64,000 nucleotides of DNA from the NCBI GenBank assembly GCA_964247055.1, contig OZ176052.1, forward strand, positions 8,618,001-8,682,000. Reading direction: 5' to 3'. The notes beneath the pieces are model-generated. The model ran no database searches. It was given only the letters and a program-made list of their open reading frames with translations, and was not told the DNA's origin. Of this stretch, positions 2,746-53,164 are shown piece after piece (the first letter of the stretch is position 1; every line of letters starts with the position of its first letter). Source of the stretch: Paragordius varius. Its lineage: Eukaryota > Animalia > Nematomorpha. The position numbers and the translations under genes were made by a program.

Positions 2746-4780
2746 TACCACACCGATGGTGTAAAAACAGCCAAACTATGCTTTAGTTTTGTACTGAGTC
2801 AAAGTTCAAAATATCTGGTCACATTACTTAATACATTAGCAACGGCTAACACCTCTATCTGGGTGGAAAAACGGCATAAAGATAAAACTGATATCGTATT
2901 ATAAAAATAACTGACTATACAAACAAAAGCACATATGTTTATGACTAAATATTTTTTTATGAATAAGCCTCTTTTACAGAGCTGTGCGCTTTTATGGGCC
3001 GCCATAACTTAGTAAAAATGATTTGTAAATCAGGTTAAAAAAATAGTGGCCCATCTATGTTTGACGCAATAATTGAATCGTAATGCGAATGAATTTTAAT
3101 GGGGATATCCATGTTTGGAAACATTGCTTTAGCGTCATTTTATATACGGGCATAATAAAATTAGAGGGTACCTCAAGATTCAAAATAGGTGTGGTTGAAT
3201 TTGCACCTTTTAAAGGAATATACGGAGATGAAATCACATGTAATACGTTTTTTTTGAATTTCTAAATAATTTTAGAGGATGGTTTTTTGCCAAAAACGCT
3301 AATTTAACAGGGATGTAGCTGAATGTTAAAAAAGCACACTATGATAGGCGCTTTGATAAATAATATATTGATTATTGAGTCTGAATAATCGCTGCGGATT
3401 CGTTCAAAATAATTTTAACATGTTAAACTTTATTTTTCGACAAGGTGTGGCGCAACATACATAACTCATATAATCCAATTGCCCAAAAGCCAATAAATAT
3501 ATATTTTATAAATTTATGATACTTAAATATTTCATCTTACATATATTTATATAAAAAACCGGGCCATTAGGAGTCAAAATTTTAAAAAATATATTTGGTA
3601 ACTGCAACTTTTAAAATTAATAAAATGCCACTAATAATAATAAACATTTAAATGCAGGTGTTCTCTATCGATTGAATAATAAATCCATATGAAATGATAG
3701 GCGATAAATAATGGAATTTTTTTTCCGCATATACTCATTTTTTAGGGATATCCAGTAAAGCGCCTCAAATACCATAGAATGCGCTTTTTTGATCCAATAT
3801 AATAGTTTTATATATTTAATCAATCAATATGCAAGGGGTCCCCAACACAAATATTTTTGCGGGCTGCTTAATTTTTGGCCTTAATTTATTTTAATCCCAA
3901 TTTTGGATGATATATTTTCTAAATAACCGTTAATTAAATTAAAATCCAATTTTTTATTTTTTTAACATTTTTCATAGCTTTTTTGCATACCGAACAAAGG
4001 GGTATAAATTTGAAGGCTTCGTAGATTCCTGAGAATAATCCAATAATATATTACTTCTTTATGAAGTAGCTTCTTAATTTAAAAAACGGCTTCATAATGA
4101 TGGTTAATTCGAACCTCTTCAATTAAATATACTGCTTAAATTAAATTTAAAAAATTTATGTTGTTTGATTTAATTAATATTGAATACGAAATGTTTTAGG
4201 ATGCTAACAATATTTGTCAATTTAAGACTTAAGGCGCTAAAATTTGAATCTTCCAAACTTTCCTCGAAAACAAAACCAGAAAAATGTTTTTTAAATGAAA
4301 AACCTTAGTCTCGGTTTTTACTATTGTATTGAAACCGGTCATACACATCTAAATGAGAGTAATATAATAAAGTTTTTCATTGTACTTACAATTTTAACAG
4401 ATGGTTATATTGGCAAGAAACTGACGCAATATTTTATAATGCGCCATGCGGCCTTTAGAGTGATTGTTTAAATAAAGATTAGTAATTGTTTTAAAACAGT
4501 TGTAAAAATTAATGGGCGATTCTTATTTGAAGCGATTCCAAGACGCATTGATAAACAAGCAGTTTCTTAATGATTTAACTAACCAAGGTTCCTATTCCAG
4601 TTAAAAGCTTTAATAAAGTTATTACAAAAATTAAAACGCACACATATTTCAGATGATATATAGTAAGTATATAAATACAAATATAATTTTATTGTGCGCT
4701 TTGATTATAAAAATTCCCTGACATCTTAAATGTAATTTTCAATATCAATTGATACGATAACAAATTTTTCGTTTGCTAAT

Positions 4781-6882
4781 TCATGAAGTAGTTATTAACG
4801 GTTCATTTTGATAATGACTTGCGTTGCCTGAACGTCCCTCCACTATCTCAGCAGGGGTATCACATTCTTTAGTATGGTATTCTAATCCTTGCCAAGTAAG
4901 ATGACTCAAATAATCAGCTAAAATTATATGATAAAAATGATAGATAAATAATATCCCTTCATTGCATTATGAAAATAATATAAAATTCTTACAACTGGTA
5001 ATAAGTGCAGCATTCATAGACTGTCTTGTAGTTACTATAAAAAAAATATAATCATTTGTTAAAAATATCAAAAAATATACGTAATTATAAAACACATAAT
5101 ATATTTACGGTGAATATGAAATGTTTAGGATAGAGGTTTAAATGGTATAACTGTTGGTATTTTATTAATCAACACCGTTAGGCCATGAAATTGTATTATA
5201 TATAAATCTAACTTATAATTTGTAAACATAAGTTAATTTTAATTTATGTTACCAGCCAAATTTTGTTACAATTACAGTAAAATTTTTAAGCTGTTTGGCT
5301 CAAATTAATCGGTTAGCTAGCATATCAAAAACATATTATGGACCGATTCCCAAACAAAATGGGAAGTTATATTTGTATCATGCATGCATCATTACATATA
5401 TAATATAAAACATATAACTATTACTTTGTTTTTCTGAATCACTCTCTTCAAATTTCTCCAGCGAATCTGATTCTTGGCCAAAATCAATTGACAACTTTGT
5501 AAAATCTAACGTGAAATTTTGGCTATAATTTATATCGGTTTGACATGCGACAATCAATTCCCACACAGTTAAAATGGGTTTGTTGAATGTTTTAAGCGTA
5601 CTTACATCCAAGATAAGGCTTTGTGGACATGCAATGAGAACATAGGCATCAATTTCCCCATAATTACCCAATTTGTATGGATTTATTTTTCCAAACACAA
5701 ACAAATATGATTTTTTACCAGCCATCTCAATGAGTCTTTTAACCCTGTTAAATTTGTAATAGCGTCATGCATAATTTTTAAAAATAAGATATAAACTTTG
5801 ACAAATTCATAAATATATGTAATTTTTTGATTGTAAAGTAAAAAACCAAACATTTTATACAGAAATTTTTGTACAATTATATATACCGGGAAATCGTGTC
5901 CGTTATTCTAGCGTCATATAAGGTTGATACAATTATACCTATGATTTTAGATTGTTTGGCCTTTTCTATGTAATGATATCGTTTTGCCAATAATTTTGAC
6001 ATTTTTGTTGTAACTTCCATAGGATTAGCATTAATATTATCACTATTAAAAGTGCATATTCTGTCTATTTTAAGAGGATTAGACAAGCGTGATTCAGATT
6101 TGATATCGAAATATAATTGAGTAAATGCAAGACTATCATTATCGCCCAAATAAATGAGTAAATTATAATTTTTATCACCATTAATGGATATATCAGTGGA
6201 CTTATAATAAAAGTTATTTTGAATTTGTATGAAATCCTTGTCGTTGGTTTCATTTGATGAACACGGATATTGTAAAAAGGAATAAGATTTAGTGGGTAAT
6301 TTTGGATGAGTAATTAATATTTTAATGATCAGATCCTTAAATTCTTCTGCCAATATATTTTCAATATATGATTTATATTCCTTATAAATGATATCTATAT
6401 TTAACTAATATATACCTTTATAAAAGCAGAGATCATAGGTTAATACAATATTTAAATGTTTTATATCCGATAATGTAATTTGGTTAATTTGATGTTTAAG
6501 GAATATAATCAAATTTTTAATGTTCAACGTTGTGTAAGGATTAAATGTATAAAAGACGGGAATTTGATTGTAGGGATTGAAAAAACACGGAATTCCAAAA
6601 TAAACTATCGCATCACATTGTATGTGACTTGCAGTTAAAAAATCGATGCAACAACTATGATAAAAAAATTTTTTACCTTCCCAGTGTAGTATCAGATAAA
6701 ATAAACATTTCTTTATCATAATCTTTTTTGATTAAATTCACAATATCCACAGCATGTTTTAATAAGTTATCCGGTAATTGAATACCAACCTAATGTTATA
6801 ATTATATTACTTTTCTGAATTCATTGGAAAAAATCCATTGACGAATTTCTTCAGATTCTCTTGGATCAAGTATGCAATTCAT
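4781..6882 (-). CDS. DPH2: 2-(3-amino-3-carboxypropyl)histidine synthase subunit 2 (diphthamide biosynthesis)
   Basis: Spliced product has VGIQLPDNLL, FILSDTTLGSCCID..ASHIQCD.IVYFG..C, KIIGIIVSTL, KKSYLFVFGKINPYKLGNYGEIDAYVLIACP and C-terminal TWQGLE...VEGRSGNASHY, all DPH2-type motifs. Introns 6790-6810 (21), 6655-6676 (22), 6395-6415 (21), 5745-5886 (142), ~5035-5420, 4918-4992 (75). Stop TGA at 4781. Confidence 0.92.
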
Positions 6883-13439: not shown

Positions 13440-15648
13440 TTAAATATTGAATTTATTTTTTAATTCCATTACATTTTCAAATGCATTTTGAACACAATGG
13501 TTGACGGAAACACCGGAATAGGACATCCCTATCAAACTAATTAGTAGATTGTTTTGTGTTATAAGTTGTTTAATATTCTCAATGTTTTTATTGTGGCCAA
13601 CGATGTACTGTGGGATACATTGCTAAATAATTTTATAAAATATATATATATCGGATATAAAAACTTTGGAATAATATGAAGTTATCTTATCAAATGAATT
13701 AAATTACAACCTCTTGAAAAAAAAATAAAAATTTTATAGTCTTAATTGGTAAAAAGGTATGGTCTAATTATTAAAAAAGTAAATTACAAATTAGTAAACG
13801 ATTGGTTAAAGTTGTAAACTTATCTATGTAAAATATTAATACTTTTTATTTACAAAGTATATGTAATTTATTAATATAATATGGTTTATATTAAAGATAT
13901 TTTATGGTATATAAACCCGTAAAATGTTGACATGACTGTAAATCGGTGATGTAGTTTTTAAACCGACTTGCGTTTGCACAGCATTAATAGCCAAATCTTC
14001 GAATCGACTTTTAGGATGCTTATCTATACTACCAAAATAATGTTCGGTCCATGCCCCGCCTATTAAACACTATATAAATAATTTGTTAATTAAGTGTTTG
14101 AACATAAGTCATGTGTTAAATGATGCTTCATAAAACTAATGTAGTATAATTTAAAATATATAAATATATTGACTATAAAAAATTTTATTGATGTAACTCT
14201 TATGAAATTATGTGTTATACATGTAAATCGCTTAAATTGTAACAAATTAATACAAAAGATTATGTTTCCTGGAGTAGAGGTCCCTGTGCAAAACTTGCTA
14301 ATATTCTTAAAATAATTTTGGATGCCAAATCTTACCAAAATATAAAGTATTTTTGAAATTTGAATATAATATCAAACAAATACAGAAAAGTTAATATATT
14401 CGGGCCAAGATGCTTGAGGAGATGATCTTAACTGTGAAACATTTTCGCATCGTAAACACCAATCATATATGACACCCAAAACGGGTGTATTTTCAACCGA
14501 AGGTATTAGATGTCCAAAACCCAAGGGTATGGTATTTAAAACTTCTTTGGGAATATCACGAGTTTTATATACCAAATGCACCATGGCAATATCAACATAT
14601 GGGATTTTATTTATGTGATTGAGCAATGATTGCATATGTGGGTAGGTTGAAGTAATTGGAATATTGTTATCAGTAAGAAGGCTCTTGCTAAGCACCTGTG
14701 AAAAATCTAAGTATGCAAATAACGTAAAAAGCTATTAGATAAGTGACAAAATAATCTGTATCAAAAATCATTTTTATAAAACGAAATCAATATGATAATT
14801 CTATATAAAAATACAAAAATCGTTATGTTCACATAATAATACCATTTGACGGAAGAGCTGATATCACATGATCAACTTGTAACTTTTGTTGACTGTTGTC
14901 TTGAGATTTGCAGGCAAACAAATTAATATAATTTTCGTGTTGATTATATTCAATACGATCAACATAAGTCTCATTTTTCATTGCTATTCGATTGATAGAA
15001 GACTCCAACTTTAACATCAACTTTTCTATGAGCGTTTCCAAACCCCGAGGGAAAAAGTATAGGGCTAATTTATCTTTCACCATTTTTTCATACAAGGGAT
15101 GTGATTGAGACTTTGATAATGCTGTTTGTTCCTTGTTTGGCCTTTTGACCATGTTTAGTAGGGATCCTTTTACGATTGATTTATGCTGAGTTTTAAGGCG
15201 TAACAAATCTGGAAAACATGATTTTGCACTAAGTTGTGTTATGTTTCCGGCATATATGCCCTTGCACAAGGGATCAACCATTAAAGATGAGATCTATGAA
15301 AAACATTGATACAACCATAATACTGAATGATAAATGCTTATTATAGCAGATATGAAGTCAAACTTTAATTATAACTTTATATATATTTGTATAATCGCAA
15401 ATAACTCTGTTTATCCTTCCGTATTATAAAAAATAAACAGTTTAAAGGCTCTTTTTTCCTTCTTAATTAAAGGGTAAGGACTGTATCTGGACTTATAAAG
15501 GCTTTCACTATCGCCCGCCCAGGGCTGACAGTGATGATGGATAAATTGCGTAGTTTCCGGGTTCGAACCCAGACATGCAGTAGAGTCCGGCGCCCTACCT
15601 ACTAAACCATCATGCCTTAATCCTTTCATATTATACATTTCCTAAAAA

Positions 15649-23258: not shown

Positions 23259-26200
23259 TTAGGACATAAAAAAATCTGCCGTGTTTTGTATGTGTTCATT
23301 TTGGGACATTGGACCCTTTTCGAATAATTTGGCTTCTTCCTGCATGCTTTCTTTGATTTTAAGTATGGCCGCGGATTCACTTTGGTCCTACATTATTTAT
23401 AAATAAAATTCGTTATTTTGATATCAATAGTAACTACCATAAACAATATAATTAATAGCCTTTACGTAATAAGTTGTGTTTTAGGCATTCAACCAATAGA
23501 TTTTATACAGTCAAAAAAAATTTACGCAGTTTTTTTTTAAAAATTGGCCCTTTTTACATATGTTTATATTTGATTTTATTAGTTATGAAAATTATAAGAA
23601 CCGGTTCAAAAAAAGTGGAACTGGAACCGCGTTGGTTCTTAAGAATTTAATAAAACCGGGGTGGTTCCTGAACAAATAGAACCGTAACCGCGTTGGTTTT
23701 TTTAAAATGCAATTCCGAAACCGGTTCTCTACATTTACGGTTTCATATATTATAAGATTATTACTTTCCTTTTATTAAAGAGGGAATAACAATATAAAAA
23801 AAATTCCGTTGTTTACGCAGCTTGTATTTAGATTCAAGGTTTAAAAATGAACTGGCTTTTGAAGAAAAAAAAACATCGCTCGCCATCATTTATTTATATT
23901 ACACAAAAGAGAAACTAAAGGAAACACTATCATTGTGGAAAATGATGAAAGAACGGATGAATTCGAAAATTATCTCCGTCAGAAAAATTTCACAAATAAT
24001 ATTTTCGATTTTATTAAAAATGCAAATTTACGAATTTAATAAACAGCCGTTTATTACCCCATCAGCCAATATAGTGTGGAAACAACTCACCCTGATATAT
24101 AAGTTGGCCAATATTGTAATGGCCGTACCTGCTAGTCAAATTTATTATAATAAATATGTTCGTATATATAGGTCCTTGTAGGAGTTTTTCCATCCTTAAT
24201 TTTATATTTTCAGACCTGAGAAGCAGTTTGACCAGCGAATTGCTTGGTACAATATTTTTTTAAAGTTAATAAAGATTTTTTAGATGCCACACTTAATTTA
24301 ACACTCATTTTATACCTTTAAACTTATAAATTCTTGTACTATACATTCGGCAATTTATGTAAATTGTTTATTTACAATTGTTAAAATTTTGATTATATCA
24401 TTATTATGATAGATATTTTGCAAGAAAATTATTTAATTAAAAGTCGGGAATCTAAAATGGAACCCGTTCTAAAGGTTAAGACCGGTTCTGGAACCGCTAA
24501 GGTTCTACTTAGGGAACCGCCCGGTTTTATTTTAAATTCGTAAAAACCAACGCGGTTCCGGTTCCACTTTTTTTAACGGGTTCCAAGCCCTGGTTTTTTC
24601 ACAATTTTATTTTATTTCTGAAGTATTTTTTAGTCACGATCAACAAACATAAATTGATATATTTTAGATTATATCGTTATGATATGAATAATATGAATTT
24701 TAAAACGTAAGTAAATTAACATTGAGAAAAATTCGAATAATAACAAAATTTTATGCTAGCTAATAAGAGTTGAAAATTCAAAAATATGACTTTTTCATGA
24801 AACCTTTTGTATGCGGTACCGTGTATTGCATGAAAAAGGTTTGACTGTAATCGCCTTCGATTGTAATATATACAATTTTTCATGTAGGTAATTACTAAGA
24901 AGGATAGTACGAATTGCGAATATAAATATCCGATAGTTTTCAAATAAGTGGATTTACCGCATAATAGGCCGTAAAAATATTAAGCAAAATAGCAATTAAA
25001 GAAAGGGCTTACCGACAAACCAGTGCCCATACTTTTTCCAGCATTGGCCCCATTGTTAGCGCTCTGGCCTGGTCCAACGCTCCCAACGCCACTGTGTAAA
25101 CTACTTGAACTGCCTGGATTCATGTTTAAGTTGCTATTTGCAACATTGTTATTATTATTGTTTTGGTTGTTGGGGTTTGAGTTTCCCCCATTTCCGTTGT
25201 TACTATTGTTAAGCGTATTGTTTGAATTTGTGCTTTGATTCTGGGGTGGAGGTGGGGACATCCAATCACTATTAGCATTGGCTGAATTATTCATTCCCAT
25301 GTTTGTGACTGAAGACGGTCCCCCGCTGTTATTGAGTTGAGTCCCACCGCCAGGAGGAGCTCCATTCCCACCTACATCAATGGATAAACAGTAATAATCT
25401 AAACCATATATGATCAAATACAATCAAACACTTATAAAATAACCAAAAATCTATCTTTCTTTAAACTTGATATTAATAGTTGAATTAAAACTTTTGACAG
25501 TTTTTATATATATATATATATATAATTTATTTTCATTCTCCGTTTTAGAAAGTAAACACTAATTTCCTATTTTGTTGAGTTTTTTTTTAATATCTTATAT
25601 TCAAACCTCTGAATTTCCTTATATTTAACATATTTTTATAAATTGGCTAAAAAAGTTTAATATTTTTACTGCCATTCTTTATTATGTTTTAGTAAAGACC
25701 ACATGTTATGTGCGTATTTTCGCTCAAAGGCTTTAACTAGTTATTTTTTAATTTTTTTTAAATGTAACGGTTTTTTATGCCATTATTTTTATAAGATCAC
25801 GTAATTTAATGGTAATCTATTAGTTACATATATTCTAAAATCCTAAAAGATATTCATATATTTTTAAAATAATTCGATAATCAAATAAAGAACAATGAAC
25901 CATTTGGTGTAGGCATAGAGTGATGTGTTGCCGGGGAAGTAAGTGGCCCTCCTGGTCCATCGGGACCTCCAGGAATACCTAACATGTGACTTCCTCCACC
26001 CATTAGACTACCACCACCACCAGGAGAAGATTTCATACCTATATTTGATTTTAACGATCGAAATCATAAATTTTAATGAAAAACAGCGCTTTTAAGTTAA
26101 GAAGCCCATCTCATGCATTTTTCTGATATGATTTTTATATAGGGATCTCCCCCCCCCCCCGGTTACTAACAAGATTTTTGAAAAGGGACAGCGTCTATAA

Positions 26201-31525: not shown

Positions 31526-34500
31526 AGTTATAATCATTTATATTTTGTAGTGTAAAAACAAATTTTTTTGCTGATATAGAGATGGAAAAATCAATAATTA
31601 AATATATTTTATACAAGGATCAACATCATCATGGTTATCTATATATATATCAGTTTATAACTATTAATTCTTTTTTTCTCACTAAGTACCACAATAGATG
31701 TATTGGGAAATTTTCAAATTAAAAAGTTAATACTGTAATGTTTATTGTATAAAGATAAAACACATATTGTAAAGTGGAGAAGTATATAAGTTAATTAGTT
31801 TAAAATATTAATTATGACTGGATATCTACTTATTTACTTACTTAAAAGTAATACTCCCACAGATTTAAAACAAATTAAATTTATATAATAATTTAGTTTT
31901 GAAATTTAAAGAGAAATAAAAATTACTGGAAAAAATCCAGGTGGCATTGGAGCACCAGGACCTCCCATTTCATTGTGACCTAAAGGCCCGATTGGGCTAG
32001 GTGTGTTTGGGTTCTATAAAATAAAATGGATATGATAAATCTACGATAATTTTTGACAAATTTTACAAAATTTATTAAAAGGCATTGCTATTGAATTATT
32101 ATGTATGCTCTAAAACTGAAACAAATTCAGAAAATAGGCTTTTACATAATGAAATAAAAATTAGTTAATGTTAGGTAAGTGTGAAGTTAACTAAAAATAC
32201 GAAAAAACACTCACATGAGCTATTCCATTGATAGGGTATCCAGAATTGACAAAACCCTACAATTAATAAGTATAAAATATATTAATATACATGATTAAAA
32301 AATTAAATATAGATAGTATAATAATACAATATCTAAAAATTAAATTTTTTTTAATTTATAAATCCAAAAATTTTTACATAATCATGGAAGGCTTTGGCTT
32401 CATTACTATGTTCACAAGATTCTCGCCTTTCGGGTGCAGCGCAATATAGATCCCAAAATACACTAAAAGTAAAATTGTAAAATATTTTTTTTAGTATTTA
32501 TAACTAATGAATAAAATGATCACATATTTATAATTAATTAATAATAAAAAATATATAAATAATTATTTTAAAAGTATTTCAAAAAAGTATATATTACCAC
32601 CACCAAGAATGCAAAAATCCTGGCGGTTCACCCAACGTTATATTTTTCTCCCATCGAATCTAAATGAGTATTTAAAAATATAAAATCATCAAATTTTTTG
32701 GATATGAAAAATTTAGATATAAATATGACCGTGATAAAACATAAATTGATTTATATCTAACCTAAATACATTTGATAAACGAATCTATAGGGGAGAAGAT
32801 TTTTTGTAATTAACAAGTTTATGGCTCTGTTTGGCTAAAAAGGTTTATTGTTTATACCTTTAATTAAATGTATAAAGATAAAACTCAACATAAAAAGCTT
32901 ACTCATACTTCAATAATTCCAAAAAAGGTCATAGTGTGAAATTGAAATCATAGAAAGGTTTTAAAAATATTTTGACGAAAACTCTTCAAATGCAATTAGT
33001 TTTACGTTAAATTTTAACTAAAATTTTCGAAAATTAAACCATGTATTCAGAATTAACTTGGGCTCGTCAAGAACAAATATAAAAAACGGTATATGGCAAG
33101 AGGTAGAAAAAGTCTGCGTTATAAATATCAACTAACTTAGTCTTAGTGCTATTACGAAACCAAAGGTCTTATGATGAGTTATTCATAGAATATCAAGTTA
33201 TTTGAATAAATGCTATTTTAAGAACAAAAACCTCCGCTTTTTTCTTGTTATGGGGGTCATTATCTACAATCATTCTTAAAAAAATTAATTTATAACACAA
33301 CCCCTAATTTGGCTGAGAGTGAAAATATACTTGGATAATAAATTGGCTAATTATACAGGCTTAAAAAACCTAATAAAATAAAACATCCCAAAATAAAACC
33401 CTTTAAAAATAAAAAAATAAGATTTATCAATGAAAATATTTACTTCGGAAAGGAATGTTTGAGCTGCTTTTTGAGCGCCAACGTGCAATAAATATTCATA
33501 GACATATAGGGCCAATCTAAATAATTTCCAAAACAACAAATTTTAATTTTTTAAAATATATAATTTTCAACAATAATTTAATGGTAATGAACGGATTGGT
33601 TATTTTTGTAATAACAGTTGTTAAAATCCGTAATTTAATGATAAAGGATAATTAAATAGAATTAAATGAAATTATAAATAGAAATTATAAACGATATGTG
33701 AAACCCTTCGTCAATAGTAATCGCAGACTAGTTTCGTGCTTGTTAGCACTCATCAGTACGACACAACTATTTGACTTGGGGTTTTCACATATCGATTTCG
33801 TATATATATCCAACTTTGCAATTTTGGTATAAATGCAGTTGGTTTTACGAATTTAAATTAAATTTAATGTAATTTATGAAAATTAAACTGAAAATTTGAA
33901 AATAAACTGAAAATTAACTCTAGGAGTGAGCCTAGATTTAGAGTATAGCTACTTAGGGATTTCATAGAAATCAATTTAATAACTAAGAAGCACTCTATTA
34001 TGATAAGAAACATAAGATAAAGATGATATTGTAATGGTAATGAACGGATTGGTTATGTTTTGTAATAACAGTTGTTAAAATCCGTAATTTAATGATAAAG
34101 GATAATTAAATAGAATTAAATGAAATTATAAATAGAAATTATAAACAATATGTGAAACCCTTCGTCAATAGTAATCGCAGACTAGTTTCGTGCTTGTTCA
34201 TCAGTACGACACAACTATTTGACTTGGGGTTTTCACATATCGATTTCGTATATATATCCAACTTTGCAATTTTGGTAAAAATGCAGTTGGTTTACGAATT
34301 TAAATTGTTCATCTTGAAAAAAAAGGCAAAAAATAACTAATAATGTTTAAAAAAAAAGTTAATAAAACCAAAATAAAATAAAGTTTGATGCATGATCCAA
34401 CTATTAAGTATCATATTGAGTCTGACCGGTATCGTTATATGACCATGACTGTGACCGCTAATAAAAAACCAAACATTTTTGAACAACACAACACTTGCTA

Positions 34501-37333
34501 TAAATTAATAAAATACAAGGATAAAACTGATATTCAATGCCAAAAATATGAAATTTAAAATTAATTCTACAACATGTACATAATTCCGATTATGGTATAT
34601 ATTCACTGGTTAAACTATATATGACAATATTTTTGAGCAATCAAACGAGACATTTTTGTTGGAACAGTCAAAAACGTAACCCTATTTCGTCAAGTTTATT
34701 TTGAAAAAAATAGACTATAAAAGAATAAAAAATTATAAATTTTCTCGGTTTAATAAAATTTAGATTTAGGCAGACGAATCCTCCTTATGCGAAAAAATAA
34801 CAATAATTTACTATAAATACATTTTTTTCAAAAGCCTCGGGCATATAAAATTTAACATCGTAAAGAGTGAGCCAAAAGTTAAACAGTAAAGTTTTATTCA
34901 AAAATATATAGATTATTGAACCCTTCAAAAATCCTAAATTTTTCTAAAGATAAAAAACGGCTTGACAAATAACATGTTTAATTTATTTTATATATCAATT
35001 AGTTTTGAAACCAGATTTTAAAGCGAATAAATTCAAATATCCAATCATTATGGAAATATGTATTAACTCTGTTAAATAACTCATTACTTATACTCTTTGA
35101 AATATTCTGAGTTAAAAACATAGGTTGGATATTTTTGTCATAAAATCGATATATATAATATAAAATGATATTACATAAGGATAGATTATTAAACAAACGA
35201 AACAAATATATTTACCATCATAAATAAATTATTAAAATTAAATATAAAACTTATGGATTTTCGATAGGGTGCATAATACAAAACTTTTAAGTAAGAATTT
35301 TTAATATGGTATCACCCTAAATATTTAACTCTTAAGATGACAAATATTTTAAAAAACAGAATCTACGGTTAAATAATACATTGGTTTATACTGTCGATGT
35401 TAGAGTATCTCGTTGTTTTAGCTTTTCATTATCGAGAACAAAAAGCGTTCCGCTAAGCATAACAAAAAAATAAAATCGAAATCTCTAGATCAAGCATTTT
35501 ACAGAACTTAACAAATCATTTCATAACTTTAAAAGCAATATCCGGTGTATACGGTAACTGAAAACAGCGATTCGAAAAAAAAGGATTCGTATGTATCAGC
35601 GTCTTTTCTAATAAAAAAAGAATTTAAGTAAAATTATCACAGGGTTGTAAAACGAAAACAATGTTGATAGCCTAGCAGCAGATACCTTATAAGTTTTTGA
35701 ACCAATGATATCATTAATGGATCTTTTACCTATTAATTAGGATATAGTCGTTTGAATGACGGCCTTAATATACAAAGACATAAAAATAAATCTTAAGCTA
35801 AATACTTGGAATGTCGCAAAAATTGTAATAGTATTTCTTAAACATCAAGTTAGAGGTGTGAATATAAGGTCATTACTTTTTTAATACTATTACTTGTTCG
35901 GATTGCTGCAAAATATTTATGCATCTTAAACTTACAATAAAACAATAATTAGGTCTGCCCATCTTATCCTAAAGAGTTTAATTGTTTTTGTGGCTAACAA
36001 GCTCCCAGAAATGGGAAGTAAAATATTTTTTAGTCAATATTTTTTCAAATATCATATTTTCATTCGCAATCGAATGAGCTTATTCACAACCAAAAGATTC
36101 ACCTATTAGATCAGTGGTGTCTAACACAAATATCTTCGCGATTGCTTCGATAATTTTGGGTTAATATTATTTATTTTGCGCCCAATTTTGGATGATATGT
36201 CTTCTAATTAATGCTAAATTTTTGATTGGAATCCAATTTTTTATTTTTTTAACATTTTTTAGAGCACTTTTGCGTAAAGAAAAAAGCGTGTTGAACATCT
36301 CTATATTAGATAAAGGTAAAAAATATGACTTCAAAACATTATTAAGAAGCACGTAAAATAAAATCACCACTTGCAATGATGAAACATCTTCCAGAATTTT
36401 GGATAAATAACAATATATACGGTATATTAAAAAGACAATTTGATAGCGGTATTTACATTGTTTTGGCGCAAGAAAAAGTATATATATAAAATTGGATAAT
36501 TCCATAATAGTCCTTGAAATATCTATTTATGGCTGCGAAAGCTACTGGGTCAGAAAAAAAGATCGAAAATTTTACCTGTTGAGAAATTTGGTTGGCGCAT
36601 ACTACTCGACAAATATAACTACTAATCCCCAATCTGAATTCTGAACTCAAGAACAATATTCTAAGGAAGATTGACCAACTTAAGTCAAGTTATTCATTAT
36701 AACAACTTAGATAAATTAAGAATGTTAGGTGTCCCAAAAGGTACTCAAAAAAGAACCACCAAGAAATATATCAACACAACAACTTATCGACAACATTAAT
36801 TTCCCCATCTCCAAATTGGTGAATTTACCCTAAGATTTATCATCCTATAAAAATTTGCATATAACCAGTTTATTTAAAGTTAGTGTTTATTCATTCGAAA
36901 ATCCAAGTATGGAAATAATGTTAAAAAACTATAATCGGTGTTAAAACAACATTAGCAAATGAAAATCGGTTTTTTGAAGTAAATAATCGATTTTAAATAC
37001 ATAAATTTTAAAAAAATAATTTTCAAATTTTCGTTCTCGTTGTGCGAAATATCGGTTTTTAAAATTGTCAAAGAACCGGTTCTTTATAAGCCAACCAAAC
37101 GATGAAAAAAACAGTTTGCAAAGAGTTTTAAAGCAAATTTGATATAAAAATTTACTTTTGCTATAAACCATTGTGTATAAACGTAAAATAATCAACGAAA
37201 AAAAAGTTTTAAAACAATAAGTTTGTAATGTTTTATTATTTTTCAAGGTCCTGCTCTCTCACACAATTCGACGACATTAACATTTATACATGTGTTAACC
37301 TATAATGTAAAATTAAAGTATTCTTATTTTGAA

Positions 37334-37376
<43 letters not shown>

Positions 37377-38005
37377 AAATTTGAGGGATTTAAACGTAAA
37401 TCACTGTATTAACTGTATAAAATGTGTATGGATATCTTTGTTTTCTAACAATTTAATAAAAGATAAACTGTCTTCCATTCATAAAACTTTCAAAATGGGT
37501 TTTTTTTACCCAAACCCTTAAACTTAAGCTGCAAAATAAATCGCTATTCAAACAGAATAGATATGGATCAGCTAAAAAATGTATTAATATTTTTATTGTA
37601 TATTATAAATATTCACAAATTTTTAAAATAATTTTTGCAAATACATGGGCAAAAAGTATAAAAATCAGATTTTTAAGAAGCTAGATAATTAAAGGAGGAA
37701 GTTTCAAAAATATTAACAGTGATAAAAAGCATAAAACCATTAGCATGAGTTGATTGGAAACGTTTATCAAAATTATGAATCCCCAAACTAAAATAATTGA
37801 AAACAAAAATTCCTATTTTTAAATTATAAACCATTTGTAAACTTTTTAAACAAATTTAAACCTTAAATTATAAAAAAACAAATAAAAAATTGGCACCATA
37901 TGGTTTTAGCTTGTGATTGCAAATAGTTTTATATTACAATAAAAAATACTTTTCTCTAGCTTGAGCGTCGGAAGGTACATTGGTACCTTTACCCTTCGAG
38001 AACAT
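23259..38005 (-). CDS. SSBP: Single-stranded DNA-binding protein / Ssdp (LDB1 cofactor), ~19 exons
   Basis: [19 protein letters not shown]|[24 protein letters not shown]|[21 protein letters not shown]|[28 protein letters not shown] (LUFS/LisH domain), then G/P/M/N-rich exons, then last exon [24 protein letters not shown]...FFMS*, resembling invertebrate Ssdp. Intron 1 is 33517-37949. Confidence 0.95.
23599..24592 (+). mobile_element. Internally deleted hAT transposon carrying a transposase C-terminal dimerization-domain remnant (last intron of SSBP)
   Basis: About 85-bp TIRs with GAACCG subterminal repeats; right end ...ttccaagccctg (CAGGG-type). Internal LDSRFK...[15 protein letters not shown]...[21 protein letters not shown]. 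Confidence 0.8.
29684..29934. mobile_element. MITE (21-bp-array family), complete TIRs, in SSBP intron
   Basis: tataccatttacagttcgaattcaccc ... gggtaaatttgaactgtaaatggtata, flanked by TA. Confidence 0.85.
30585..30865. mobile_element. hAT-like MITE (CAGGGGTGTCCAA family), degenerate, in SSBP intron
   Basis: Shares ggcaagaactagaaa..gtgtttgcatttt..gcccat..aatgcggccc..aagccatt..ttggacat with 57868-58083 and 45064-45307. Confidence 0.6.
30900..31270 (-). mobile_element. Decayed LINE 3' fragment
   Basis: Minus strand encodes GRLRWAGRI, the RL.WAGH..R motif typical of RTE/L2/CR1 ORF2 C-termini. Confidence 0.5.
31491..31520. repeat. (AT)n microsatellite
   Basis: 15 AT units. Confidence 0.95.
33720..33762 (-). 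ncRNA. Type I hammerhead ribozyme (intact core)
   Basis: Minus strand GTCGTA-CTGATGA-GTGC-TAACAA-GCAC-GAAA-C-TA-G-TC^-TGCGAT: 6-bp stem I, CUGAUGA core, 4-bp stem II, GAAA, short palindromic stem III (ACUAGU), GUC cleavage triplet. Stem I extends into a long hairpin spanning 33692-33794. Confidence 0.88.
34174..34210 (-). ncRNA. Defective hammerhead copy (6-nt deletion removes one stem II strand)
   Basis: GTCGTA-CTGATG-AACAA-GCAC-GAAACTAGTC-TGCGAT; identical to copy 1 except for loss of plus-strand AGCACT. Confidence 0.75.
37337..37374. repeat. (TA)n microsatellite
   Basis: 19 TA units in SSBP intron 1. Confidence 0.95.
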
Positions 38006-41000: not shown

Positions 41001-44000
41001 TATTATAATATCAATAGTTAGTATAGCTATAGATAATCAATATATATATTGACCATTCAAAATTACAACATTCTTATTAATGATAAATTTAATAAAAAAA
41101 TTATATTTTAACGTAAAATCATATGTTAGCTTATCAAAAATTAAAACCTTAAATATTAAAAATTTAAAAAAAATATTTGATGAGACTTTTATAATATATA
41201 ATACATTTAAATTATATCCATAATTTATATAATATTTTAACATATTAATTCACAAATTCCACATATCAAAATCTAAAAAGAGCTTTAAAACACTGTTAAA
41301 TTCAAATCATTGGAGCTATTTAAGATATTAGAACCTACCAAATTAATACAACACAAAAAAATTAAACGTAGTAATCACGCTATATATTCTAAAAATTCAA
41401 GAAACTTTCACAAGTCATTTGATATTTTACTTGGATGTTATTTTTTGAGAACAAGACCAATATGTTCTTCTAAAGTTATGCTATATATAGTACAATTTAA
41501 AAAAATAAATTCCTGACCTTTTATTTGGCATGCAATATATTGTGTTAAATGAAGGTATAAATTATTGCAAAAAGATTCGGTTAAGCCTGGATAGCCGTGG
41601 TTTCTGTATAGTTTGCATAAAAAGACTCTTGTGTTATGCTAGTTTATATGTTTATCCATTGAAAAAGATTTATATTATCGTGGGAATCATAATTACATTG
41701 TAAAGACGCGTTAACTTGGAAATATAATAAGATTGATACTGATTTTTAATAGGATATAAAACTCCGGCCTCTTTCACTCGGTGTGTGGTGTGGCAGAGTC
41801 CGAAAGCTGAAAGTGCGTAATTTTACATCATCAATATCAGCTCTGTGTAGGCAAATATTTATAGCTTTCACAAGTCTTGATACAAATTAAGCCCTTACCC
41901 ATCTATATAAAAAACAAACGAGTGACTCTAAACTGTATATTCTATTTTAAGATAGATTAGATTATATATAAACCCCCAAATATTCACCGGTTAAAGTTAA
42001 GCGAAACAATCAAATTATCAATATGTATTTTAGAAACAAACGAGAATAATGGAGTTTTTCCTATTTATGCCCCTATAGGAGGGATGCCCAACGCATATAG
42101 TTCTCCGTGACATTTTGTACGCACGCGAAAATTTTTTGAAAAAATTTAATAAAATCGAAATTCTATGATTTGCAAAAAATTCGGATCACAAATTTTTAGA
42201 TGAAATTAGATACAAATATTATATCACTTTTTATTATTTTTGAACATTTAAATGAGATGATATTTGATTAAGTATAAACACCGTTGATTGTTCGATAAAT
42301 CGTTAATTAATTTTAGTCCGTTTATTATTTATATATAAAAACATTTTATCCTTTGATTGAATAAAACTATCGGGTTTTAACGGATTAGATATATTTTTAA
42401 TATGCGGCTGGCCATTTCTATATGGGTACCTCTGCTTTTGATTCTATCCTCTTTCAGCATAGAAGAAATTCAGGATTTCAAGAGTCATGTTTATTTAAGC
42501 ATAAAATATAACACGTAAAATTTTACGGAAAAGGAATAATGAAAGTTATTTTGTTTAGATTAGAACATTTCCATTTGGTTATAACTGCGTATTTTCATAA
42601 AAGGGAAAAACATGATAAAAATGGGTTAATCTCGTGAAATTCCTTGAAACTCGTCATATATTGTAAGGCGAAACAAAATTTTATAATTAACAAACAGCAT
42701 GAATTATTTGCATCCAAATTTTTACAGAATTAACAAAACAAAATTAATTCCAAATAATTAAATAGAAAAAATAATTTATAAATAAAATTATAATTAATTA
42801 CATAGTTATGGAAAATGCCGACCTAAGCGGTGGCTCTAAAATAAGCCATAATGTTAGAAATGCCAATTCATAGAATGAAAAATGATAAATCCGAAGTATA
42901 TAGACCCTGATTATATAATAAATGGTAAAAAAATAGGTTTGACCGGATGAAACATTATGGGAAAGATGTAAAAAAGTTTAAACAGTGTGAGCAAAACAAG
43001 GTCATCGGTTTAAGAGAGAAAACATGAATTTAATTTATAAAAAAGATTTTAAAGTTAATGAATTGGGAAAAGGATTAGTGCTAGATTGCATTTTCCGGGT
43101 ATGCCATTACAATGAAAGAATGTATAAACACTGTTGGGGGAAGGGAGAATCATTAAATTAAAAAAATGGTAAGTCTCGACCATTGAGTATGCGATGCTAC
43201 CAGAGACCTAAGTCCATCTTGGCATTATTTAATGCAAAAAATAAGGCAAAACCTAATTTTATATAATGCCCAAGGGATGTGGGATAGATTTGATAAATGT
43301 GTTGGGCTGAGAAACACAGGAATCGATTTTTGGATTATGTTTTTAATATAATTATACGACTCATGGAATGATTAAATCGAAGACTGCGTTTAGACTGTGT
43401 AAAAAACAGGTGGTTTTAAAAAAACTGCCCTATTAATATATTCTAATAAAAAAAGTAGAAGATTCTCATAGAGTTTGGGATTATGAGTAATGTAAAAATG
43501 TTATTTCCACTCTTGTGGTTATTTCTCCTAATAAAAAATCGTAAAATCAGTGCAAATAAAAATATTTTTTGGTGAAAGCTAAAGCCTTCATCACCAAATT
43601 TTGCTTATAAATTACAAAAATATCTATTTTATTATAGATGTGACAAAAGTCTCAAGTTTATAAACCCCTCTAAAATAAACTATCTTTTGATACAAAATAA
43701 AGTCTACCGCTATAACAAGATTATTAACATGGCTCAGTATAAAAAAACGTTTTCCCACTCGGTAAAAACTTTTTACCAATCAATAAACGAGTTTAAATTT
43801 GAAGATTATATCAAAATAGAAAAATATTTTTTACCGTACTTACTTATATTGACAATTTTGTTGTCTTCGACTTGAATAATCATTAATTGACTTTTTGTGT
43901 TATTTTTTAAATTTAATTTATTTGCAGCTCGATTACCACAACATTTTACAATCGGTCAAAATCAAATATTTTAATGGTAAAAATTAAAAATATTGCAAAT

Positions 44001-52011: not shown

Positions 52012-53164
<1,153 letters not shown>

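Follow-up and report, generated by a model that had tools for sequence, protein, structure and literature searches.

Type I hammerhead ribozymes of animals are found in tandem repeats of 150-450 bp, arranged as dimers to large multimers, with a low GC content and in many invertebrate phyla, and the transcripts of these animal retrozymes are highly self-paired linear and circular RNAs (PMC7229834). In the usual layout helix I has 6 bp, helix II has 4 bp and helix III has 1-2 bp with a small palindromic loop; a helix III of 1-2 bp blocks efficient cleavage by a single motif, and two tandem motifs fold as an active dimer (PMC4209133; PMC6466107). The newt and axolotl motif HHR_Amex1 is the single-bp helix III form: its monomer cleaves 6% in one hour, and its dimers are efficient. 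According to a preprint, animal retrozymes are non-autonomous relatives of the pseudo-long terminal repeats (pLTRs) of Penelope elements, and about 43% of the Xenopus retrozyme copies overlap introns, a modest depletion (bioRxiv 10.64898/2026.07.22.740005). Here we describe a hammerhead motif in a stretch of 64,000 nt from Paragordius varius (Nematomorpha; assembly GCA_964247055.1, contig OZ176052.1, positions 8,618,001 to 8,682,000), hereafter the window. The motif lies in intron 1 of an SSBP gene, and it is very probably the ribozyme of a non-coding mobile element, of the non-LTR (long terminal repeat) retrozyme or non-autonomous Penelope-like kind, that inserted into this intron in sense orientation. 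Judged by its sequence, the element belongs to a known class, that of the animal ribozyme-carrying retroelements, and the present copy is young and half-decayed.

The motif itself is found at the following position:

33720..33762, minus strand: intact type I hammerhead (recognised from the sequence, from a match to the Rfam family Hammerhead_HH9 at 26.7 bits, and with our own descriptor, which gave 1 match against 0 in 300 simulations)

Read on the minus strand, its parts are GUCGUA / CUGAUGA / GUGC-UAACAA-GCAC / GAAA / C-UA-G / UC / UGCGAU. Helix I (GUCGUA/UGCGAU) has 6 bp, two of them G-U, and is followed by the 5' core CUGAUGA at 33756-33750; helix II (GUGC/GCAC) has 4 bp and can be extended to 5 bp by a U-A pair around an AACA loop. 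On the 3' side of helix II come GAAA, the hexamer ACUAGU, C17 and then the 3' strand of helix I. Helix III consists of the single pair A15.1-U16.1 and the palindromic tetraloop CUAG, which together make up the palindrome ACUAGU. All invariant nucleotides are present (C3 U4 G5 A6 U7 G8 A9, G10.1-C11.1, G12 A13 A14, A15.1-U16.1 and C17), and since C17 is base 33726 the cut is predicted between 33726 and 33725. With helix I open, helices II and III closed and the G10.1-C11.1 pair in place, the motif is assigned to type I. A sequence-only reading of this DNA, which preceded our analysis, had quoted the same letters, placed the cut at the same bond and described an intact type I hammerhead with a tiny palindromic stem III; each of these statements is borne out by the sequence, the cut remaining a prediction.

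Besides the core, the descriptor asked for 3 or more bp in helix II, 4 or more bp in helix I and a helix III either paired or palindromic. It matched once in the window, on both strands taken together, and in none of 300 first-order Markov simulations of the window. The looser pattern CUGAUGA-N8-36-GAAAC occurs twice, where 0.03 occurrences are expected, and the second occurrence is a decayed sister copy of the motif, described below. The site thus reads as a complete type I hammerhead, beyond what chance would give, and is predicted to cleave itself.

The hammerhead stands at the tip of a long hairpin:

33692..33794, minus strand: extended hairpin of stem I, tipped by the hammerhead (from the fold of 33685-33800)

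This imperfect hairpin of 103 nt is built from the pairings UAGU/ACUA, GUCAA/UUGAC, CCC/GGG and a 12-bp stretch, CGAUAUGUGAAA/UUUCACAUAUCG. The pairings that had been listed from the letters are reproduced by the fold, whose minimum free energy (MFE) is -42.7 kcal/mol (z = -6.75); none of 200 shuffled sequences was as stable. The GC content of the hairpin is 41.7%, against 26.7% for the window.

What the sequence-only reading had left out is a second copy of the motif, 453/454 nt upstream, and the direct repeat in which both copies are contained. The repeat is made up of the following parts:

33573..33859, minus strand: direct repeat copy A (the downstream, 3' copy), with the intact hammerhead (repeat search, blastn and alignment)
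34026..34306, minus strand: direct repeat copy B (the upstream copy, 5'-truncated; repeat search, blastn and alignment)
34174..34210, minus strand: decayed hammerhead of copy B (pattern match at 34185-34204; alignment columns 154-159)
33860..34025, minus strand: non-duplicated unit body between the repeats, 166 nt, without an open reading frame (ORF; alignment)
33726..34179, minus strand: predicted unit-length RNA of 454 nt between the two cleavage sites (fold and repeat spacing)

Copy A is 287 nt long and the 3' end of the element lies near 33573. Copies A and B are on the same strand and differ by 2 substitutions and 3 indel events over 274 aligned nt; blastn gives 95.8% over 288 columns with gaps counted, and the copies are about 98.5% alike. 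Because only 2 substitutions in 274 nt separate them, the insertion is taken to be young. From 34306 down to 33573 on the minus strand, the layout is that of a 5'-truncated upstream unit followed by a complete one, and the 734 nt of the element correspond to 1.6 units of a 454-nt repeat. In copy B the hammerhead has suffered a 6-nt deletion (GTGCTA) that removes the 5' strand of helix II, while CUGAUGA, GAAA, ACUAGU and the cleavage-site strand are kept, with C17 at 34180. As in retrozymes, then, type I hammerheads recur at the locus in units of a few hundred bp that are direct and head-to-tail, with one of the two cores deleted. Since the intact motif shares a 1.6-unit repeat with a second copy, its presence in SSBP is explained by insertion, and not by selection specific to this gene.

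Further properties of a retrozyme are also found. The element has neither an ORF (its longest stop-free stretch is 65 codons) nor a Pfam domain, its GC content is low (26.7%), and the 454-nt unit RNA is highly self-paired, at -88 kcal/mol (z = -4.59), with its ends pairing as helix I.

The intron that hosts the element is defined by the first two exons of the SSBP gene:

37950..38005, minus strand: SSBP exon 1, with the ATG at 38005 and a translation of 19 letters, not shown (sequence; in-frame junction with exon 2)
33517..37949, minus strand: SSBP intron 1, 4433 nt, GT...AG, host of the element (sequence)
33444..33516, minus strand: SSBP exon 2, with a translation of 24 letters, not shown (homology)

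A donor GT at 37949-37948 follows directly on exon 1, and the acceptor AG is at 33518-33517. In exon 2, 24/24 residues are identical to the LUFS domain of Drosophila Ssdp (6s9r; E = 2.5e-10); the exon also matches SSBP2 structures and is nearly identical to human SSBP2. A later exon near 32440 matches SSBP2 at the end of the LUFS domain, and the series of SSBP-like exons continues along the minus strand as far as about 24980. Within intron 1 the hammerhead lies in sense, with 209 nt from the predicted cut to the acceptor. The sequence-only reading had joined exon 1 to position 33516 and put the motif about 210 nt before an acceptor at 33517-33518, and both points agree with our model: the junction is in frame, and the motif accordingly lies on the coding strand. 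The gene model and the predicted splicing of intron 1 hold on homology and reading frame.

Two side observations concern the same gene. The C-terminal SSBP-like exon (24980-25423, minus strand) is extremely rich in runs of Asn, Gly and Ser, as is typical for coding sequence in a genome of 27% GC. Intron 1 also holds a member of another dispersed repeat (36123-36286, with a second member at 3844-3999; about 76% identity over 166 nt), which has no relation to the unit with the hammerhead.

Direct observations are the motif and its hairpin, the layout of the repeat, the decay of copy B, the absence of coding capacity and the position in sense within an intron; for retrotransposition, the dimer mechanism and the copy number of the family, we infer from what the family does elsewhere. 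On this analogy, a non-coding retroelement of about 454 nt per unit would have inserted in sense orientation into SSBP intron 1 as a 5'-truncated partial tandem of 1.6 units. Every unit of such elements carries a type I hammerhead at the tip of a long stem I hairpin, and in multimeric transcripts two neighbouring hammerheads would join through their palindromic helix III (ACUAGU in this case) to form a double hammerhead. The double hammerhead would excise a unit-length RNA with 5'-OH and 2',3'-cyclic phosphate ends; this RNA would be circularised by the host tRNA ligase, and the circular RNA would be copied to DNA by a Penelope-type reverse transcriptase (RT) supplied in trans.

In the topology of a double hammerhead, each active site would take its core and helix II from one copy and its cleavage-site strand from the other. 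As copy B has lost its helix II, one composite site would be left at this locus, that of the copy A core acting on the copy B site 34180/34179; the site 33726/33725 would be cut only in the weak single-hammerhead mode. This assignment of cores to sites is our reading of the topology. The nearest precedents are the double hammerheads of avocado sunblotch viroid (ASBVd) and newt (Forster et al. 1988, as reviewed in PMC6466107), which are alike in having an unstable helix III with a palindromic loop and tandem motifs able to merge; they differ in that one partner here is without helix II, which by topology would leave at most one of the two composite sites.

Folding of the 734-nt tandem transcript gave an MFE of -150.0 kcal/mol, against -146.7 kcal/mol for an enforced double hammerhead and -147.6 kcal/mol for an enforced single catalytic-like fold, so that both of these lie within about 3 kcal/mol of the minimum. 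The MFE fold pairs C3-U4-G5 with the UAG of the palindrome and is an inactive conformer. In this model, thermodynamics permits all three folds and expresses no preference for catalysis. A stronger proposal is that the live copy A core acts as a 'one-way' double hammerhead, which cuts 34180/34179 and, more slowly, 33726/33725, releases a 454-nt RNA for circularisation by means of host-gene transcription, and measurably lowers SSBP output; we regard this as unlikely, and the effect on SSBP mRNA is expected to be small.

Compared with the animal non-LTR retrozymes (PMC7229834), among them newt and axolotl 'satellite 2' with HHR_Amex1, the locus is alike in that each of the short direct repeats, low in GC and without an ORF, contains a type I hammerhead and that the unit RNA is highly self-paired, and also in the dimensions of the ribozyme (helix I of 6 bp, helix II of 4 bp and helix III of 1 bp with a palindromic tetraloop), which imply action as a dimer. 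It differs in the 454-nt unit, which is at or just above the described range (genomic repeats of 150-450 bp; RNAs of about 170-400 nt), and in having only 1.6 units with one of two cores dead.

Penelope-like elements with pLTR hammerheads (PMC4209133), the proposed source of retrozymes, share with the locus a minimal or palindromic helix III, direct flanking repeats and insertion as a 5'-truncated partial tandem. They differ in that there is no ORF for RT or GIY-YIG endonuclease between the repeats here, and the most reduced Penelope-like motif, 'min-HHR', differs in that the present hammerhead has a canonical helix I/II layout. An autonomous Penelope-like element, in which an ORF for RT and usually GIY-YIG stands between hammerhead-bearing pLTRs, was considered for the locus and rejected, as only 166 nt of unique sequence without an ORF separate the repeats.

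Several results weigh against the assignment to a retrozyme-type element. At gathering thresholds, no Rfam family matched anywhere in the window, the hammerhead families included. A search in E-value mode returned Hammerhead_HH9 at 26.7 bits, below its gathering score of 52, with E = 1.7e-4 in a 501-nt search and E = 0.021 for the whole window against all 4227 families; sub-threshold as it is, this is the best match of the entire window to any of these families. Most of the shortfall in score arises because the alignment lacks the five positions with which HH9 builds its helix III hairpin. The intron ORFs tested had no Pfam match, to RT or endonuclease or to any other domain, the remainder of the window not having been screened for a Penelope-type RT. 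No unambiguous target-site duplication was seen, only an AATT/TTAAATT microhomology that is not significant in DNA of 27% GC, and sensitive blastn found no unit copies in the window beyond the two repeats. Lastly, pattern scans for relatives in viral (IMG/VR), metagenomic (JGI) and prokaryotic (GTDB) sequences gave unrelated hammerheads or nothing, with none in GTDB.

Some of the rejected matches are described here for the record. A 43-nt blastn match at 42754-42793 was discarded as an extra unit copy, being AT-rich low-complexity sequence. Two IMG/VR contigs (L001:6710-6742 and L002:2966-2998) have in common one and the same hammerhead-like motif, whose helix III is a real hairpin (CUAGUCC...GGGCUAG); this is probably a hammerhead of the phage type, unrelated to the window. 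The metagenome contig L003 (Ga0126339_10028693) has, at 1420-1451 on the plus strand, a type I hammerhead-like motif with the same GUGC/GCAC helix II and ACUAGU helix III, and a second CUGAUGA...GAAAC match at 3240-3277, and its neighbouring ORFs are without a Pfam RT match; L003 is an unrelated contig, richer in GC and without similarity in the flanks of the motif.

Taking these points into consideration, we weighed four other explanations of the motif. The first, put forward by the sequence-only reading, is that the hammerhead cuts the nascent SSBP pre-mRNA often enough to compete with the removal of intron 1 and thereby tunes the dosage of SSBP, as a dosage-sensitive gene, with the CPEB3 ribozyme as precedent. 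We consider this unlikely. The core is intact, in sense and inside a very long intron; however, its helix III of 1 bp with a palindromic tetraloop puts it in the class in which monomers cleave about 6% per hour, and the sole possible partner copy is without helix II. A catalytic-like fold lies only 2.4 kcal/mol above the MFE, but it is the MFE fold that sequesters C3-U4-G5. Inhibition of the intronic Cpeb3 ribozyme raises CPEB3 expression, and Cpeb3 is the one validated intronic case; its half-life of 2-3 min is matched to 9931 nt of downstream intron (PMC10919898), against the 209 nt that separate cut and acceptor here. The modest depletion of Xenopus retrozymes from introns hints at a cost (bioRxiv 10.64898/2026.07.22.740005), but introns cut by a slow hammerhead are spliced normally: in vivo, hammerhead-cleaved introns were spliced as efficiently as intact ones, and only the fast hepatitis delta virus (HDV) ribozyme aborted splicing (Dye 2006, Fong 2009, as summarised in PMC2995048). 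The near-identical repeats also point to a recent insertion and not to an old selected feature. The claim that cleavage competes with splicing of this intron is therefore unsupported, given a repeat copy with a weak helix III, a dead partner and the precedent of slow hammerheads.

The second explanation, a short tandem duplication of local origin or a satellite-like repeat, with a hammerhead in it and kept up by processes at the DNA level without mobility through RNA, has a low probability. Only 1.6 units are present, with no clear target-site duplication or tail, as such a repeat would have it; the newt 'satellite 2' hammerheads, which were first described as satellite DNA, are nevertheless now classed as retrozymes.

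It is very improbable, thirdly, that the motif is a domesticated, conserved intronic ribozyme of the HH9/HH10 kind, kept in SSBP for mRNA biogenesis. The amniote ribozymes HH9/HH10 (RECK, CTCL) and the HDV-like CPEB3 ribozyme resemble the present motif in that a self-cleaving motif, here predicted, sits in sense within an intron of a protein-coding gene, and an origin from hammerheads of retroelements has been proposed for the intronic hammerheads of amniotes (PMC6155905). HH9 is the top Rfam family, and its consensus is resembled by the helix I flanks (GUU ... UACU) and by loop 2, which is rich in A and 6 nt long, but the score is half of gathering and the five helix III positions that enable the monomer fold of HH9 are absent. 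The amniote and CPEB3 ribozymes occur in single copy, fold as monomers and show conservation between orders or classes; here the motif belongs to a young duplicated repeat without a stable helix III, and the next exon is 209 nt away, as against about 10 kb. Lying within a duplicated unit whose copies are 2 substitutions per 274 nt apart, it is better read as a young insertion, and its sister copy is already decaying. For the same reasons, namely the duplicated unit and the missing HH9 helix III positions, we rejected its classification as a single-copy, monomer-folding conserved intronic ribozyme.

Finally, the reading that AT-rich DNA matches the hammerhead consensus by chance, to which the score below Rfam gathering could be taken to point, was rejected as next to impossible on the simulations (0 in 300 simulated windows), the hairpin fold with the motif at its tip (z = -6.75) and the duplication of the motif along with the unit.

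The remaining observations concern the genome in which the retrozyme-type element is found. Two true ultra-short GT-AG introns, of 24 nt (52132-52155) and 22 nt (52303-52324), interrupt a UMP-CMP kinase-like gene on the plus strand; the 24-nt intron is in frame and would be read through as VNIFILLK. The same window holds SSBP with its 4.4-kb intron and several introns of 0.5-1 kb. Animal introns under 30 nt have so far been reported only for myxobolid myxozoans and Dicyema (PMC13644364), and in a limited literature search we found no report of Penelope-like or hammerhead elements in these animals. A DPH2-like exon (5877-6353, minus strand; 158 aa) had only four matches, with E from 1e-3 to 7e-6, among 1.8 billion protein representatives, and for a PPOX-like exon (14829-15281, minus strand) no homologue was found within its length class. 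On these sequences, the lineage is one that evolves very fast and has very divergent proteins.

Being an unremarkable member of an established class of retroelements with ribozymes, the insertion has little to say on the regulation of SSBP. Its interest, which is modest, lies in documenting a retrozyme-type element, with an amphibian-like hammerhead of the dimer-dependent class, in a very AT-rich, fast-evolving animal genome with introns of 22-24 nt. The tandem pair of an intact and a dead motif is a natural construct for assigning each cut site of a double hammerhead to the core that acts on it. If the unlikely one-way double hammerhead were nonetheless true, it would be a case of host-gene transcription replacing the element's own promoter, and this in a genome where normal introns have no more than 22-24 nt. 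And should sense copies in introns prove to cut host pre-mRNAs across the genome, this would bear on the depletion of retrozymes from Xenopus introns.

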